From the NCBI RefSeq assembly GCF_000143415.4, contig NW_003314361.1:186001-250000 (forward strand): DNA of 64,000 nt. Reading direction: 5' to 3'. Shown one piece after another: positions 1 to 10,600 of the stretch. Position 1 is the stretch's first letter; every line of letters starts with the position of its first letter. The stretch is from Selaginella moellendorffii (Eukaryota; Plantae; Lycopodiophyta). The notes beneath the pieces were generated by a model that was not told the origin of the DNA, did no database searches, and saw only the letters and a program-made list of their open reading frames with translations. The translations under genes and the position numbers were made by a program.

Positions 1-2697
1 CGTCCACCCGCAAAGTCGTTGCTCCAAACGTTCTCCACCACTTCCAAGGAGACGCTCTTCCCCGACGATCCGTTTCGACACTTTCGCAACAAGCCGTCGC
101 ACCGCCAGGCCATCATGCTGATGCAATACTTTTTCCCCATTCTCGACTGGCTTCCAAAGTACAAGCTCGGCTTCCTCAAGAATGACTTCATCGCTGGCAT
201 CACCACAGCAAGCCTGTCAATCCCCCAGGTAACTTTCCATCACGTAGCCATTCTTCCAGCTGCTAAAGAGCTTGTCACTGTCTGTCAACCGCAGGGAATC
301 GCTTATGCCAAGCTCGCAAACTTGCCACCAGTTGTAGGACTATGTAAGTGACGTCCTTTCTCTTTGCACTGGCCCGAGTAAACTAACGCTGGAAACTTTG
401 CTTTGAAGATTCGTGCTTTCTCCCGCCGATGGTGTATGCCATCTTTGGCAGCTCCCGGGACTTGGCCGTAGGACCAGCTGCGGTCATCTCCATTGTGCTG
501 GGAACTCTCATCCGAGAGGACCTCGGACCCGAAGTAACGGACCCGCGAGCACACTTGAGCCTCGCTTTTACTTCCACCTTTTTTGCAGGCCTCTTCCAAT
601 TCTCGCTGGGATTTCTCAGGTCAGCCTTCGGTTTCTCGTGTCTTTGTCTGTGCTCGAGGAACACTGCTGTAAAATTTTGTTTTGCTTGGTGGCAGGCTTG
701 GCTTTGTCATTGACTTCCTATCGCACGCAGCGACTGTCGGGTTCGTAGCCGGGGTGGCGGTTGCTGTGTGCCTTCAGCAGATGAGAGGCATCCTCGGCAT
801 CCAAAACTTCACCAAGAAATCGGACGTTGTCTCCGTTTTACATTCCATCTTCCGTGACCCAGCACATGTAAGGTGTCAGCTCGCCTGTCGCAATACGTCG
901 GAAGGATGAGCCTCGAAAAAGGATATACTAGAGCAAGTACTGACGACAGCCGGCTTGTTTCGTGTTGGTATTGTGTTGGCAGTGGAACTGGCGAACCGTT
1001 GTGATTGGGATCTGCTTCCTCACCTTCCTTCTGGGAATGAGGCAAATCGTAAGTTGACAGCCAGGAAGAGAAAAGGAAAAGAAAGCTAACGACGTGGTGC
1101 TTGTCTGTGCAGAGCAAAAGGAACAAGAAACTCTTCTGGCTTTCAGCTATCGCACCTGTAACATCGGTGTTCCTGGCAACGGTGTGTGTGTTTGCAACGC
1201 ACGCCAACGAGCACCTCAGCATTGTAATCTTTTCTTTCGCTCGCTCTTGCACCGTAAGTTACTTGCTTGTTCGTAGGTAGGACAGCTCAGGAAAGGGATC
1301 AATCCTCCATCCTTCAAGGAGCTACACCTGACCGGGCCTCTGGTATCAAAGGCAATGAAAAACGGGGTCATTGTAGCAATCATCGGTCTCATGGTACGTA
1401 CCAAAGTGGCTATCACGGATCATGGTTGACTGAAGAGTTTGTGTCCACAGGAAGCTATTGCAGTGGGACGAACATTTGCATCGATCAAGAACTATCATAT
1501 CGACGGCAACAAGGAGATGATCGCTTTTGGAATGGTGAACATGACGGGGTCTTGCATGTCCTGCTACATCACGACTGGTTAGTCATGCAAGGAAAAAAAG
1601 AGAACTTACACTTCGCTGATTGATGCTGATCGATCATATAACTTCCAGGAGCAATGTCGCGAACGGCAGTGAACAACAGCGCGGGATGTAAGACGTCGCT
1701 GTCGTGCATTTTCATGGCGCTCATCGTCATGGTAACACTTCTCGCCTTGACACCGCTCTTCCACTACACGCCCAACGTCATCCTCTCTGTAATAATCTTC
1801 TCCGCTCTCATCACACTCATCGATCCCGTGGAAGCGTACCACATCTGGAAGGTTGACAAGATCGACTTTCTGGCCTGCCTGGGAGCGTTTCTCGGCGTCT
1901 GCTTCCAGTCCATTCAGCTGGGATTACTCATAGCGGTGAGTCCACCAAAAGCATGCAAAGAAGTACCATGATTTTGTGGAACTTTTAACTTCCAGGTTGC
2001 CATCTCCATAGGAAAGATTTTGCTGCATGTCAGCCGGCCACACACAGCAACGTTAGGCAAGATTGCTGGCACCAGCATCTATAGGAGCATCGAGCAATAC
2101 CCCAAAGCTGTAAGGATCCCGGGAGTTCTCATAGTTCGCATAGACGCGTCCATTTACTTCTCAAACTCCAACTACATACGAGAAAGGTTAGTTAGTCCTC
2201 CTGTTACACAAAGTCTAAAAGGCGTGTGTAATCTATCCCCAGGCTGACGAGATATATAGAGGAAGAGCAAGGGAGAGACAAGCTTCCGGGTGAAAGCGCA
2301 TTAAAATACCTCATACTCGACCTCACACGTACGCTCATCACACATTCTTAACCTTTCTCTCTGTCTCTCTGATGTAACACTCACCCATGATCAGCGGTCA
2401 TGACCATCGACACGTCTGGGCTTCACGTCCTGGGAGAGATTCTCAGAAATCTAAACTTGATGGAAATGCAGGTGAATCTTTCTCTCTTTTTCTTCTCTCA
2501 AAAGCTAAAGTTAAAAAACAATGCAGCTGGCTCTAGCGAACCCAGGGGCAAACCTCATAGAAACTCTACACAAGTCGGGTTTCGTGGAGAAGCTGGGCGA
2601 GCAATGGGTGTTCCTGACAGTGGACGACGCAGTGGAGTACTGCTCAGTCAATTTGCAAAAGATGAAGGAGATGCCAGAAGTGACCATACAAAGATGA
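1..2697 (+). CDS. SULTR: Sulfate transporter (SULTR/SLC26, STAS domain), copy 1; 5' end lies outside the window; multi-exon
   Basis: Exons encode ETLFPDDPF, PQGIAYAKLANLPPVVGL, GSSRDLAVGP, EAIAVGRTFA, NYHIDGNKEM, SRTAVN and STAS motif IDASIYFSNSNYIRER; GT-AG introns; stop TGA at 2695-2697. Confidence 0.95.
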
Positions 2698-4573
2698 TGG
2701 GAGGAAAAAAGAAAAAGGACTGATTGAGAAATAGAGGAGAGATCGACACCAAAGTTTTGGGGACTGACGAACAGTCAACAAAGCAAGCAAAGTAGCTCGT
2801 ACCTTGGAGGGCGCCCAAGTTGAGCACCGAGTGGAATGGGGGAATGGAAAATGGAACCCTTGTTTTGGTAGTGAAACTTCTAAGTTTAGAAGACACTAGA
2901 TAAACATAAAGAAGAATCCCACTCTGGATTGTTCTTCCCGCAGTGTGGGTGTGTGTGCGTCCCTGGCCTAGCCTGCTTTGAATCTCAATCTTCGTGTTCT
3001 TCTTTGCGAAAAGATTCCAATCTCCTTTTGAAAATGCAGCCGGGCGATCGAGCTTTTTTTCTCTTCTTTCTTCTTTTTTACTGAAGTACACTGTCCTGTT
3101 GTGGCATGCTCAGCCAATTGTTCTCCCCTGCAGGCATTGTTCCCCACCAATGACCAACCTTTTCCACATATCAACTTGCTTTTGACATCAAATGTCAAGC
3201 TTCTCTTTCCCTCTTCTGGAGCGATTGATTGATGGAAGCGAGTGCAAGCCGACGTCACCAGGAAGAAATAATGATCTGACCAACACATCCGAATCGAGGC
3301 CAAGCTCGATCTCGAGAAAGAGGTCGTCCGGAAAGCTTCTTTCAGGAGCATACAATATATCAAAAAATGGAGGGAGGGTGGGTGCATAATTTGCTCATGT
3401 GATTGTCGTTTCCATTGCTGGTCGACTTGGGCTCCAACCAATGCCACTCAAGAAGAAATCCACAGGTGAGGAATAAATATCATGGCAGATCTCTCTGGGG
3501 GTGAGTGGCAAAACACACGATTTTTATTACTCCAATTGAAGAAGCACGTCTGCCCATGAATCCAACTATGTCATGCTTTCTTGCTCTTCTATTACATATT
3601 ACATGATCAGTGCACCACCTCCATGCATGAGTTTTTTAATCTATATCCAGAAGCCATGGAGGCAGAGCCCATTTAAAGCACGAGAGAATCTCCCTCACAC
3701 AGGAGCCTTAATCGTTTCGTTTGCGTGACTGGGGAGAAGTTCCGAGGCGTGGCACCGTAGAGTTGTCCGAAATTAAATTGAAAGCGCAAGGTGGTGATCG
3801 TGTTGAATCAAACTGGTTGTGAAAAGGATGATCTCAAAAACATTGCCTTCACCGACCAGCGGAATCGAATATGTTCGTGACCACGGACACTGGTGCATGA
3901 GCCTAGAGACATCTCGAATCTTCAAAAAAATTGCATCTGCGATCGACACCTCCCGCTCTCCTTTTCTCTAGCGCTGGCCAGCGATCGGACCCAGCGCTTT
4001 ACATGTATGCATAGATAAGATTGGAATTTTTACGGCTGATCGCCGAGCTCATCGCGTAAAGCACTGGAACATGGCAAACAGGAGCTGTTGTGTCGCCCAA
4101 GCGCATAACCCAAATGCCCAAAGAACCACCTGAAAAACAAGGAAAAGAAAGATGATCGATCGAATATGCGTGAGAATATTGGAAGAGAAATATGTGGAGC
4201 GTGTACTTAAGTACACACTTTGAGCCGAGGTGGCGGTCCACGCGGGTCTCGGTGGTCCTTGTGAATCTATCATATGTATAATGGGGGTGAGCTTGGAAAA
4301 AAGAATGGAGGCTAAGTTAGGCGCTCCCTTTCTCGATTCTGGGAATGCGGGCAGCATTTCTGGGTGATATAGGAATCCCGTTGGAATCCCCTGCCTATAA
4401 AGGAAAAGATCCTCGTCTCGACTCGCTATGATTTTGCCTTTTGAAAGATCATTCCTCTCAGCTCCAAGCTAGAGCTCTAAGCTCAATTGGTTCTCTTCTA
4501 ACTAGTTATAGCAAGAGACCTCGAGAGGTTTGTGTTCTTTGATCAATAGTGTTTTTACCACCAATTGGCGACC

Positions 4574-7518
4574 ATGGATGAGCACAAGATTGACGAGCAG
4601 CAACAAGCTGGGCAGCTGGAGAGCTACCAGAACAGATCAGGGGAGAGCCGCGGAGGCGTGGAACAGTCCTTGTCCCGGATCGTGTCGGGTTCGTCGGAGC
4701 GATACATCGTGCAGCCGGGCTCCATCAATGTGCACAGCATGCAGGAGGTGCAGCGAGCGCCGCGCAAGAGCGCGTTCCGGAAATTGTCTTCGGCGTCCAG
4801 GGAGACGCTCTTCCCGGACGATCCCTTCCGCCACTTCAAGAACCAGCCACCCGTCACCAAGCTCGCCATGGCTGCCCAGTACGTCTTCCCCATCCTCGAG
4901 TGGCTGCCCAAGTACAAGCAAGCCTACTTCAAGAGCGATCTCATCGCCGGGATCACCATCGCCAGCCTCTCCATCCCACAAGTAAAGCTTCTAAGTTCTA
5001 TCTAGCTACTCTGAATCTTTCACTCCGATGATCTGGAAACAGGGAATCGCGTACGCAAGGCTCGCGGGTCTGCCTGCAGTGCTGGGGCTATGTAAGAAAG
5101 CACACACAAGCTCTTCGTCATGCTCCAAAGTTGATAATCGCTTTTGTCCTTGTAGACACTTGCGTCGTCCCGCCCGTGATCTACGCACTCTTCGGGAGCT
5201 CCAAGGATGTGGCCATGGGTCCCGAGGCGGTGTTCGCGCTGCTGCTGGGAAGCCTGGTGCGATCGGAGCTGGGCGCTCACAACGAGAGCGTCGAGGACCA
5301 TCTCCGCCTCGCCTTCATGGCCGTCTTCTTTGCCGGCTTGTTCCAGGCGATGCTCGGCTTCTTCAGGTAAAGTACAAGTAGGGCTCTTCTTCCTTGCGAT
5401 AGGTGATCACATTCGCACCATGTCAGGCTGGGCTTTGTCATCGATTTCCTCTCCCACGCCACCACCGTGGGCTTCATGTCGGGGGCGTCGCTGGTGGTGG
5501 CGCTCCAGCAGTTCAAAGGCATTCTCGGGCTCACGCACTTCACCAGGAAGTCTGATATCGTCTCGGTCGTGCACTCCATCTTCCAGCACCCCTCCCAGGT
5601 CGGTTTTCCTTGTGAGATCTCCTACCTAGAGAAGCTTCAACTTGTTCGTCTTAACGTTTGATGGGCAGTGGAACTGGAGGACCATCGTGTTTGGCGTCTT
5701 CTTCATCTCGCTGCTGACGACGGCCAGAGTGATTGTAAGTTTGGCTTTGCGTGCGATGATCTTGATGGCGATCACATATAAGACACATATATAAGTCAGC
5801 TGGCGTTGTTTGCAGAGCAAGCGAAAAAAGCGTCTGTTTTGGGTGTCGGCAGTGGCCCCCGTTACATCCGTCGCCCTCTCCACGCTCATCGTCTTCCTCA
5901 CGCGGGCCGACCACCACAACGTTGGCATCGTAAGTTCTTCCTTCCCGAGCAGTAGTAGTAGTATAACTCCTCGGGCAAACTCTATATATACAGGTCGGGA
6001 ACTTGAGGAAGGGATTGAATCCGCCATCTCTACGCTACTTGTCCTTCCACGGCCCATTCCTCGTCAAATCTGTCAAGATTGGGATGGTGCTTGGCCTCGT
6101 GGGACTCATGGTAATTCTTGTCAATCGCTTTGGTAACTCGGAGGCTTGGTGTTGAGTAATTCATTCAGAGAAACATGCTTGCCTTGGCAGCAAGTCATCC
6201 TGGTGGGCCGAACGTTTGCGTCGCTTAAAAACTACCACATTGATGGGAACAAGGAGATGATCGCCAGCGGCATGATCAACTTGATTGGCTCCTGCTTGTC
6301 GTGCATGGGATCATCTGGTAAGACTAGAGCATCTTTACGCATGATCGAAGCATAACTTTCATTGTTGATGCAGCGGCGATGTCCCGGACCGCAGTGAACC
6401 ACAACGCCGGCTGCAAGACACCGGTTTCTAGCATTGTCATGTCGGCTCTAGTCATGGTGACCCTTGTGGCACTCACGCCGCTCTTCCACTACACTCCCAA
6501 CGTTATACTCTCGGTCATCATCTTCTGCGCGCTCGTGGGCTTGATCGATCCGGTCGCAGCTTACGAGATATGGAAGGTGGACAAGATCGACTTCCTGGCG
6601 TGCATGGGAGCATTCTTCGGTGTTATCTTCCATTCCATCCCTCTGGGACTTTCGGTGGCGGTAAGCTTGAGTTCCGAAGAACTCATGTTTGAGAAAGGAA
6701 TGCTCGTTATCCGAAACTAACGCGATCGAGACCATGGCTCGCAGGTTGGCATCTCTGTGCTCAAGGTACTGCTGCACGTCACCAGGCCTCATGCTGCGAT
6801 CCTGGGAAAGATTCCGGGGACGAGCATCTATCGGAGTATCGAGCAGTATCCACAGGCCATTCGAGTACCGGGGATCTTGGTCGTCCGCATCGAAGCCGCG
6901 ATTTACTTCTCCAATGCCAATTACGTCAGAGAAAGGTAAATTCACTTTCGCGTAGGTACGGTGTTTTCGATCAAGCCTTTGAAACGGGAGAACAGTGACA
7001 AAGCTTGTTTCTTTCATGGTGGCTCTCAGGATCATAAGATGGATAGAGCAGGAGACGAATCTCGCAAAGGCCTCGCCTCTCAGATTTCTCGTAATCGATC
7101 TCTCTCGTAAGCTTCTTTCTGTTCTTGCGCATGTAACACTATTGGACGCCGTGTTTCAGCTGTCATGAGCATCGACACGTCGGGAATCCACGCCTTTGTG
7201 GAGATCCACAGGGCGCTCAAGGCGTCAGACATTCAGGTAGAGGGATTCGTTGAATCACCTTTCTTTTTGTCTTTCTTTTGACATGGATTTCCATCTAATG
7301 CGCAGCTAGTTCTAGCGAATCCTGGAGCCGAAGTGATTGAGAGGCTGCACAGGGGTGGCTTTGTCGATATCTTGGGACAGCGGTGGATCTCCTTGACTGT
7401 GGACGACGCGGTTCACTACTGCTCCATGCAGCTCCCACGAGACAATAACGTAGACAACCACGAGGACGTCAGCGAGTGCGATGTTATCGTCCAGATCATA
7501 CCAAAGTTTGGCCTGTGA
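4574..7518 (+). CDS. SULTR: Sulfate transporter-like (SULTR/SLC26), tandem copy 2, with altered anion-site residues
   Basis: Same exon layout as copy 1; MDEHKIDE...ETLFPDDPF, QGIAYA, GPEAV, QVILVGRTFA, STAS; ends IIPKFGL*. Confidence 0.93.
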
Positions 7519-7658
7519 TCTCCTTTCGCCTGTACACTACTTAACACCCAATAACTTATTCGCTGTATATTCCTTGCCCGATCTATACAGAAGAGAGAGT
7601 TTCGTGTGAGTCTTGTTAGCTCCTAGGGCTGGGAGAGAGAGCTCCAGGAGGGCGCGGA

Positions 7659-10600
7659 ATGGAGGAAGCGGTGGCAGCGCTATCCACATTTTCTTTGGAG
7701 GTAAGCGCAAGCGCCTTGTGATTCCATGGATGAAAACAGAGCTTTGCCGCTGCTCCAGGGCAACCAGCCGGACATTCAAGGGCTTGCTGTCACGCTTCTC
7801 ACTGGCAAGAATGCGTCTCAAAGTCCTCTCGGTAATACACGATCGCATTCTACTTAGTACTAGCTAGGGAGTATGGATCTCTCGCTCGCTCACTCGATGA
7901 AAAAACCTGGCAGATTACGAGGATGTTGCTGCTTACCAGCTACAACTCACGGAAGACTCCAAGTCGATCAATCAGCTGGTTTGTTGGTTTTCTCTGGACG
8001 ACTTCTTACTTATATCGAGATTTACAGAATGTGCTGGTGGAGCAAGGCAACGAGATGGTTTCTATCCTCTATACGTATCGCAGCTGTGTCAAGGCTCTTC
8101 CACAGGTAGCTATTGCAAAGTTTGTTCCAAGACTCTCTCGACTTGCTCGACTCACTTGGCTCTCTTCTTATAATGGATCGGTAGCTCCCCGACTCCATGA
8201 AACAGAGCCAGGCAGATTTGTACCTGGAAACGTACCAAGTGCTCGACATTGAGATCGGTCGCTTACGTGACATCCAGCGCTGGCAAACAACAGCCGCGTC
8301 AAAAGTATGATATGATTTTTCGAGTGCTTCTGTAAGTGCTCATTATTTTCACAGCTCGCAGGCAATATGCAAAAGTTCTGTCGGCCGGAGAGAAGAATTA
8401 ATGGTCCAACCGTGACACATATGTGGTATGTGATACTTCATTGTTTTTCGTTTTGCATCACAACTTCCAAGCATACAGGTGTATTCTAAAGCTTCTCGAT
8501 GTTCTTTTGCAACTCGACCATTTGAAGAATGCAAAAGCAAGCATCCCAAATGATTTTTCGTGGTACAAGAGGTGAGATCACTATTAATTGCGTTCTTTCT
8601 TTTTCCCTGCCGCTGGACTATTTGATTTCACAGGACGTTCACTCAAATAAGCACCCAGTGGCCGGATACGGATTCCATGAGAGAAGAACTGGATGACCTG
8701 CAGGTATCTCTACTTTTTCTCCATACCTTGAGGTTTATAATTGTGCAGATTTTCCTGAGTACAAGATGGGCCATCTTGCTTAATATACAGGCAGAACTTT
8801 TCCGAGTGAACAAGTATGCTTTGTTCGCCTTTCCGTTTTTCTTACATGAGCTTGAACAGCTTGGAAGACCTCCTTCAAGTTTTGATCAACTTCTGCCTGG
8901 ATGCATTGGAGTCCGACCATGTTGTCCTTTACTCCGAGAGGCATGTATTGCTCAGGGTGCTACCCGTTCTGGTGGTTCTCGCCATTTCCTCTGAGAAAGA
9001 AGGCGACTCAACATTCAAGAAGATCAAAATAAACAGGCTCATCCGGGTGTTTCGGGTACATTTCATTTCCAGTTTCCTTCTGATAAATGATTTGTTTCTG
9101 TTGTTAGAGTGATCCGGTAATTCCCGCATTTCCAGATCTTCACCTTTCGCCTGCAAGCATGCTGAAAGAACTGTCGCCTTACTTTCGGAAAGTTGCGGCT
9201 CAAAGCAGACTGACGTCGTTGCCTGCACCCCACGAACTTGCTCCCCGTGAAGCTTTAGAATATCCTTTCTCTGGTGGCCATGTTTTTATTTTCTTTTTGT
9301 CGCCTTGACGAGGAGAACGTATCAGAAAGAGTACCTGATCATACATCACATGCCTGCCATTCGCTTCGCTCATGACGAGTTCTGCTTGCATTTTGCTGCT
9401 GCGATAAACAAGGTAAGAAGCTCATTGTATGTGTCGAGTAATATTCCGACCATTTTTTATTCTTTGCAGCTCCAACTTCTAAAGTGTGCCAGAAACGTAG
9501 ACGAGGCTCTCAGTACCAAGATCAAGGAGGATGTCTACATGGCAATTCTTGAAGGCTTTCAGTGTCTTAGTGAATGGACAGGCCGCGTGTGGGAGCAGTG
9601 TGCTTGGAAGTTCTCCAGACCTTCAAAAGAAGCCACTCCATACGACGAGGATGTCTCAGCTGTTGTCACAGACTATGAGAAGGTATGGCTGGCATGTCGA
9701 TTAAGATGCTACGTTTTGAGCGTTTGGTTTTAAGGTTGTACGCTGCAACTATTCCCCCGAAGAAAGGAAAGCTATGGTGGAGCTGATAAGCTATATCAAG
9801 GGTGTTGGCTCCATGCTGGAGCACGTTGATACTCAAGTTGCCGAGACAGTGTGCGAAGTCATACATTCGCAATTGCAAGACTTTGTGCAAAACAAGCTTT
9901 CCTTGATGCTGCGAACTTCCATGAAGAAAAAGAAAGAACTATCTCGGTAAGGACATTATTACATCAAAATAACTGGTGCGCATTGTTGTTTTGATCTTAG
10001 AATCGTTACTGAGATGAGGACCATCGCAGCGGACTGGACAAATAGTAATGGTGATCAAGAGAAAGGATCTTTCAGGAAGACGAAAGATGAAACTGATAGA
10101 TTTCCAATCACGGTTCGGGCTACAGCTCCTACGGCTGCCCAGGTTTGTAGCCTTTCGGCATTCTCTTTAAATCTATTTGACTTTTCTCCTTTCAGCTTCA
10201 TTGCCTGCAATTTCTGATCCACGAACTTATCTCTGGGAGTCCCAAGAAAGCTGCAGTATTTTTCGGAAGTAACGAAACTGAGATCGCATCAGCCGACATG
10301 AAACAACTCGACTTGTTCTTCAACAAGCTGGCGTTTTACCCCTACATCCTCGATTACAAAGGTGAATTTATGCATTTCATTCTCTGCATGCTTCCTAAAA
10401 CATGATAATTCAGCTACGATTTTTCATGTCACCGATCTCGGATTTATCTGGTTCCGTGAGTTTTATCTGGAGACTTCTCGTGTAATACAGGTACTCGCTG
10501 TCAAGTATTCTACTGACGTTACTGGTTCTTTGAATGCATGTTACAGTTTCCTATCGAGTGTTCTTTTCCGTGGATGCTGGTGGATTATATACTAGAATCT

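Follow-up and report, generated by a model that had tools for sequence, protein, structure and literature searches.

The H+/sulfate symporter AtSULTR4;1 (PDB 7LHV) positions Glu347 of TM8 about 7 Å from the bound sulfate, where Glu347, Thr388 and the carbonyl of Gly389 jointly hold a water molecule (PMC8298490). The E347Q mutant keeps ~40% of transport and almost completely loses its stimulation by a pH gradient (PMC8298490). In the rice phosphate transporter OsSPDT (SULTR3;4, PDB 9U9F) the equivalent glutamate binds phosphate directly (PMC12513419), and in SLC26A11 the electrostatics of the pocket depend on whether the TM8 Glu is protonated (PMC13408680). The picture of proton coupling in the SLC26/SULTR family rests largely on this one residue, from mutagenesis of AtSULTR4;1 and SLC26A11. 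The TM8 Glu is conserved across the SULTRs aligned in two papers (PMC12513419, PMC12666378), one of which covers Arabidopsis and poplar, and the SULTR literature cited here makes no mention of a Glu-to-Gln change in spikemoss SULTRs. The animal SLC26 exchangers and channels (prestin, pendrin, SLC26A9) have a non-acidic residue at the TM8 position and an aromatic residue in TM3. In prestin the TM3 residue Phe137 confines the anion, and both Phe137 and Val353 touch the salicylate ring when salicylate is bound (PMC9584906).

The window analysed here, 64,000 nt of Selaginella moellendorffii DNA, contains two tandem SULTR genes that lie on the + strand and have the same exon pattern. They are referred to as copy 1 and copy 2 and are 63% identical across 616 aa. 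An earlier note on this DNA had claimed that copy 2 is an otherwise intact gene in which the TM8 Glu is replaced by Gln, a new Glu appears in TM3 and the TM10 lead-in is altered. The letters and coordinates behind this claim (GAA at 1451, CAA at 6191, GAG at 5224, and SCMGSSAAMSR in place of SCYITTGAMSR) were all correct on re-reading.

Table 1. Positions of the two SULTR genes, their exons and the pocket residues, numbered from the first letter of the window.
Feature	Position	Strand	Description	Equivalent residues
Copy 1, SULTR gene	1-2697	+	5' end cut by the window start	
Copy 1 exons 1-7	1-228, 295-343, 409-619, 696-867, 983-1048, 1113-1223, 1277-1393	+		
Copy 1 exons 8-13	1451-1577, 1649-1935, 1996-2186, 2243-2328, 2395-2471, 2527-2697	+		
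Copy 1 TM3 Ala	477-479	+	Ala codon in GPAAV	AtSULTR4;1 Val152
Copy 1 TM8 Glu	1451-1453	+	GAA, opens exon 8 (EAIAVGRTFA)	AtSULTR4;1 Glu347
Copy 1 TM10 AMSR	1651-1662	+	Part of lead-in SCYITTGAMSR; in place of SFSR	
Copy 2, SULTR/SLC26 gene	4574-7518	+	ATG at 4574, stop at 7516-7518; 13 exons, 702 aa	
Copy 2 exons 1-7	4574-4981, 5043-5091, 5156-5366, 5427-5598, 5669-5734, 5816-5929, 5994-6110	+		
Copy 2 exons 8-13	6191-6317, 6374-6660, 6745-6935, 7030-7106, 7160-7236, 7306-7518	+		
Copy 2 Glu176	5224-5226	+	GAG in GPEAV, N-terminus of the TM3 half-helix	AtSULTR4;1 Val152, OsSPDT Val169, prestin Phe137
Copy 2 Ala177				AtSULTR4;1 Ala153, OsSPDT Ser170
Copy 2 alternative acceptor segment	6169-6190	+	22 nt upstream of exon 8; transcript contigs of 3/4 runs	
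Copy 2 Gln380	6191-6193	+	CAA, first codon of exon 8 (QVILVGRTFA)	AtSULTR4;1 Glu347, OsSPDT Glu370, prestin Val353
Copy 2 TM10 lead-in	6299-6387	+	SCMGSS-A-AMSR; Ala422 codon split by the intron (6317 + 6374-6375)	
Copy 2 Ser421, Ala422, Ala423				AtSULTR4;1 Thr388, Gly389, Ser390
Copy 2 Met424, Ser425, Arg426				AtSULTR4;1 Phe391, Ser392, Arg393

Gene structure and transcripts of copy 2

The 12 introns of copy 2 all run from GT to AG and measure 53-94 nt, and the frame is open from position 4574 to the stop codon. Similarity searches used the copy 2 exon translations, exon by exon. The Sulfate_transp domain (PF00916) matched exon 3 (E = 6e-16), exon 8 (E = 2e-9) and exon 9 (E = 4e-24). The STAS domain (PF01740) matched exons 10 and 13 at E = 6e-4 and 4e-3, which is under the Pfam cut-off; the match is weak because the domain is split across four exons, and the corresponding region can be aligned to the STAS portion of full-length homologues. 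Every exon of copy 2 is collinear with full-length SULTRs in the alignment. Rfam and tRNA searches of the whole window gave no matches.

The copy 2 stretch is present in 20 public runs from nine studies. The sampled-word share was ~0.4-0.6, which fits the exonic fraction of the stretch. Splicing was determined from transcript contigs placed on positions 4300-7800 and taken from four runs, each of a different study. These contigs carry 12 of the 12 predicted junctions, including 6110/6191, and thereby confirm the splice at 6191 that makes CAA the first codon of exon 8. Being contigs, they report the presence of copy 2 transcripts and not their level. They contain six coding variants, four synonymous and two non-synonymous, and no alternative letter at 6191 or at 5224-5226. 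Sequencing or assembly error was rejected as a source of the changed codons, since four independent studies have identical letters.

In three of the four runs the contigs also use a second acceptor at 6169, with between about one third and four fifths of the depth of the main form. Use of this acceptor shifts the frame, and translation ends 18 codons further on; none of the splice forms therefore brings back the glutamate. A Glu-restoring splice was rejected on these grounds, the frameshifting 6169 acceptor being the sole alternative junction. A sizeable share of copy 2 transcripts may be spliced at this site, and the isoform may represent unproductive splicing. The description of copy 2 as otherwise intact was borne out by a 702-codon open frame with 12 GT..AG introns that is spliced as predicted and expressed.

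The copy 2 transcript contigs continue into the next gene on the + strand (7600-7800) with a spliced intron at 7699-7756. This arrangement indicates that neighbouring genes are packed very tightly or that their UTRs overlap.

The proton and anion site

The exon translations were aligned with phmmer to the PDB chains 7LHV, 9U9F and 7V73, and residue equivalences were read off the ungapped alignments; the best-scoring solved relative of the copy 2 exons was rice SPDT/SULTR3;4 (9U9F). Copy 2 shares with AtSULTR4;1 the SLC26 fold elements, as judged by sequence, a probable STAS domain, and the equivalents of Ala153 and of the residues Gln112, Tyr116, Ser392 and Arg393, which correspond to Gln136, Tyr140, Ser425 and Arg426. 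It differs at Glu347 (to Gln), Val152 (to Glu), Thr388 (to Ser), Gly389 (to Ala), Ser390 (to Ala) and Phe391 (to Met). The two proteins also differ in family position, AtSULTR4;1 belonging to the SULTR4 clade and copy 2 to the pre-SULTR3 branch. The TM8 change is the same Glu-to-Gln substitution that was engineered in AtSULTR4;1 E347Q (PMC8298490); the engineered change stands alone, whereas the natural one in copy 2 is accompanied by the new TM3 Glu and by the TM10 lead-in changes. Since prestin Phe137 and Val353 both touch salicylate, the lost and the gained glutamate of copy 2 are predicted to adjoin on the same face of the pocket.

OsSPDT belongs to the SULTR3 lineage, as does copy 2, and provides a precedent for a substrate change through pocket substitutions. 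It keeps the phosphate-binding Glu370 and has Ser170 and Ser413; copy 2 carries Gln380, Ala177 and Ala423 at these three sites (PMC12513419, PMC12666378) and is therefore without the phosphate signature. Copy 2 resembles the animal exchangers and channels in having a non-acidic TM8 position, but these distant relatives carry an aromatic residue at the TM3 position that is acidic in copy 2.

Copy 1 retains the TM8 Glu and has Ala at the TM3 site against a near-invariant Val. The Ser390 to Ala and Phe391 to Met changes in TM10 are common to both copies, which places this part of the TM10 change in their common ancestor, and the changes confined to copy 2 are Tyr to Met, Thr388 to Ser and Gly389 to Ala. 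The TM3 Ala and the AMSR motif of copy 1 indicate that the pocket of the pair was already diverging before copy 2 lost its Glu. The earlier note had counted three pocket changes as peculiar to copy 2 and had used copy 1 for comparison. All three changes do lie in elements of the anion and proton site, but the Ser390 and Phe391 substitutions are not peculiar to copy 2. Copy 1 is conventional in keeping the TM8 Glu but not in TM3, where its Ala departs from the consensus Val.

The pocket columns were compared in a set of ~460 streptophyte SULTR sequences gathered by searches, in which SULTR1-type sequences dominate. Glu occupies the TM8 column (Glu347) in 243 of 244 sequences, and the single exception is a garbled fragment. 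The TM3 column (Val152) is Val in 212/214, the Gly389 column is Gly in 343/347 and the Phe391 column is Phe in 348/352. Copy 2 reads Gln/Glu/Ala/Met in these four columns (Glu347/Val152/Gly389/Phe391) and copy 1 reads Glu/Ala/Gly/Met. Copy 2 is the sole real exception at both the TM8 and the TM3 sites among ~240 streptophyte sequences. Angiosperm SULTR3;3 proteins typically have Ala at position 390 (PMC12666378). The TM8 Glu that copy 2 has lost is invariant in the other plant SULTRs sampled and is required for pH-gradient stimulation of transport (PMC8298490).

Family position and rate of evolution

Close relatives of the pair were sought in several ways. A HMMER search with exon 9 against 50%-identity cluster representatives found none above 66% identity over exon 9, and a word search with exon 9 gave fragments only, at ≤68% identity. 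The best 120 matches of two profile word searches, built from the exons and full-length homologues, contained neither copy 1, copy 2 nor a close orthologue. Offline scoring with the second profile predicted both copies in the top 20, and their absence therefore means that they were probably outside the 8000 scored candidates. The exon and profile searches retrieved no lycophyte orthologue of copy 2 outside this species. The closest relative obtained was a Diphasiastrum protein at 55.6% identity. The HMMER search also returned two predicted proteins, P0001 (2626 aa) and P0002 (1730 aa), with 32 and 19 degenerate tandem copies, respectively, of the SULTR TM10-TM12 exon segment. Both resemble an exon fragment that was amplified in tandem in some plant assembly.

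A quick maximum-likelihood tree was calculated from 36 rows, in which SULTR3;1 and SULTR3;5 are thinly represented and SULTR4 is absent. In this tree copy 1 and copy 2 form a sister pair (SH-aLRT 100), and the pair groups with SULTR3;3/3;4-type sequences (SH-aLRT 98), separate from the SULTR1/2 group and from a group of bryophyte, lycophyte and charophyte sequences. Published trees place two spikemoss genes, Sm184750 and Sm169988 (AC-IIB), at the base of SULTR3 (PMC3355512, PMC12666378). The position of that pair agrees with the position of copies 1 and 2, a comparison made by tree placement alone.

The end branches of the 36-row tree are 0.45 for copy 2 and 0.38 for copy 1, and Tajima relative-rate tests of copy 1 against copy 2 with six outgroups were all non-significant. 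The two copies differ by a dN of 0.29 and a saturated dS of ~2.2, which indicates an old duplication and a pair under purifying selection; the pairwise dN/dS is a long-term average of both copies and is compatible with recent relaxation in copy 2. Among 126 columns with ≥97% conservation, copy 2 departs from the consensus in 18 and copy 1 in 11. The ten deviations found in copy 2 only fall on 6 of 29 conserved columns in TM3, TM8 and TM10 versus 4 of 97 elsewhere (Fisher p = 0.01, a value that is indicative only because the pocket segments were defined after seeing the data). The earlier note had proposed to abandon its reading if a different splice restored the Glu, if copy 2 was silent or if it evolved neutrally. 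No Glu-restoring splice was found, copy 2 is expressed and its rate equals that of copy 1.

A remodelled site and its interpretation

These results point to copy 2 as a maintained, transporter-like protein whose proton and anion site has been focally remodelled, as opposed to one in decay. They exclude an artefact, a mis-splice or a decaying pseudogene as the main reading of copy 2. Judging from its pocket residues, copy 2 probably couples or selects its cargo differently. The preferred reading, to which we give a probability of about 0.4, is that copy 2 is a long-retained pre-SULTR3 (AC-IIB) paralogue in which the protonatable carboxylate would have moved from TM8 to TM3. Proton shuttling at the TM8 position would be lost with Gln380. 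Glu176 is predicted to lie one residue ahead of the sulfate-binding backbone amide and to adjoin position 380, and it would be the sole carboxylate left at the site. Good anion binding would be expected only with Glu176 protonated or paired with Arg426. Copy 2 would thus stay a proton-dependent anion carrier with its protonatable group on TM3 rather than TM8, and the relocation would probably alter how the carrier responds to pH, how tightly it binds or which anion it prefers. On the other hand, a carboxylate buried next to Arg426 could do no more than neutralise the site.

Copy 2 might instead have an uncoupled or exchange mode, like E347Q or the animal SLC26 proteins, with Glu176 only tuning affinity or selectivity, for example toward a less charged or different solute. 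The E347Q mutant still transports while nearly insensitive to the pH gradient (PMC8298490), the mammalian SLC26 proteins except A11 have a non-acidic residue here and work as exchangers or channels (PMC8298490), and a substrate change is known in the SULTR3 lineage, where OsSPDT carries phosphate (PMC12513419). We consider this mode nearly as likely as the relocated carboxylate. Two points speak against it: the new carboxylate lies exactly beside the lost one, which is unexpected if coupling was simply dropped, and a negative charge in the anion pocket should impede binding unless it is protonated. A non-transporting or regulatory protein is a distinctly weaker candidate. Glu176 would then act as a tethered anion or as an Arg426 partner that blocks the site, and copy 2 would have a partner or sensor role as proposed for SULTR3;5 and for other SULTR3 proteins in which no activity was detected. 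Such a role draws on prestin S396D, in which an Asp in the site mimics bound chloride (PMC9584906), on the several SULTR3 members that transport sulfate poorly or not at all alone (PMC12666378), and on the apparent conservation of the STAS domain and overall fold in copy 2. Copy 2 retains every one of the anion-holding equivalents (Gln, Tyr, Ser and Arg), however, and these would be needless in a pure scaffold or sensor.

It is very improbable that copy 2 is a redundant duplicate drifting to loss and that its pocket changes are tolerated damage. The presence of a tandem duplicate, the common frameshifting splice isoform and the higher count of conserved-column deviations in copy 2 than in copy 1 are in keeping with drift. 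Against it stand the 702-codon open frame with 12 precise introns, expression in many runs, and deviations that cluster in the pocket instead of being spread over the protein. The duplication is also old, as the saturated dS indicates, but the copies differ by a dN of 0.29 and evolve at equal rates.

With the relocated carboxylate as the preferred reading, copy 2 might represent a natural relocation of the SLC26 coupling carboxylate from TM8 to the N-terminus of TM3, with a new coupling geometry and possibly a new substrate, and would then be the first plant SULTR known to function without the TM8 Glu. We put this broader claim forward as doubtful. Copy 2 is an apparently maintained, expressed protein that is without the TM8 Glu but has a Glu at a neighbouring pocket position. 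The adjacent copy 1 is a built-in conventional control, and exchanging the two residues between copy 1 and copy 2 would show directly whether coupling, pH dependence and anion choice depend on where the carboxylate sits. Copy 2 also bears on the first steps of pocket diversification in the SULTR3 lineage, from which a phosphate transporter later arose.
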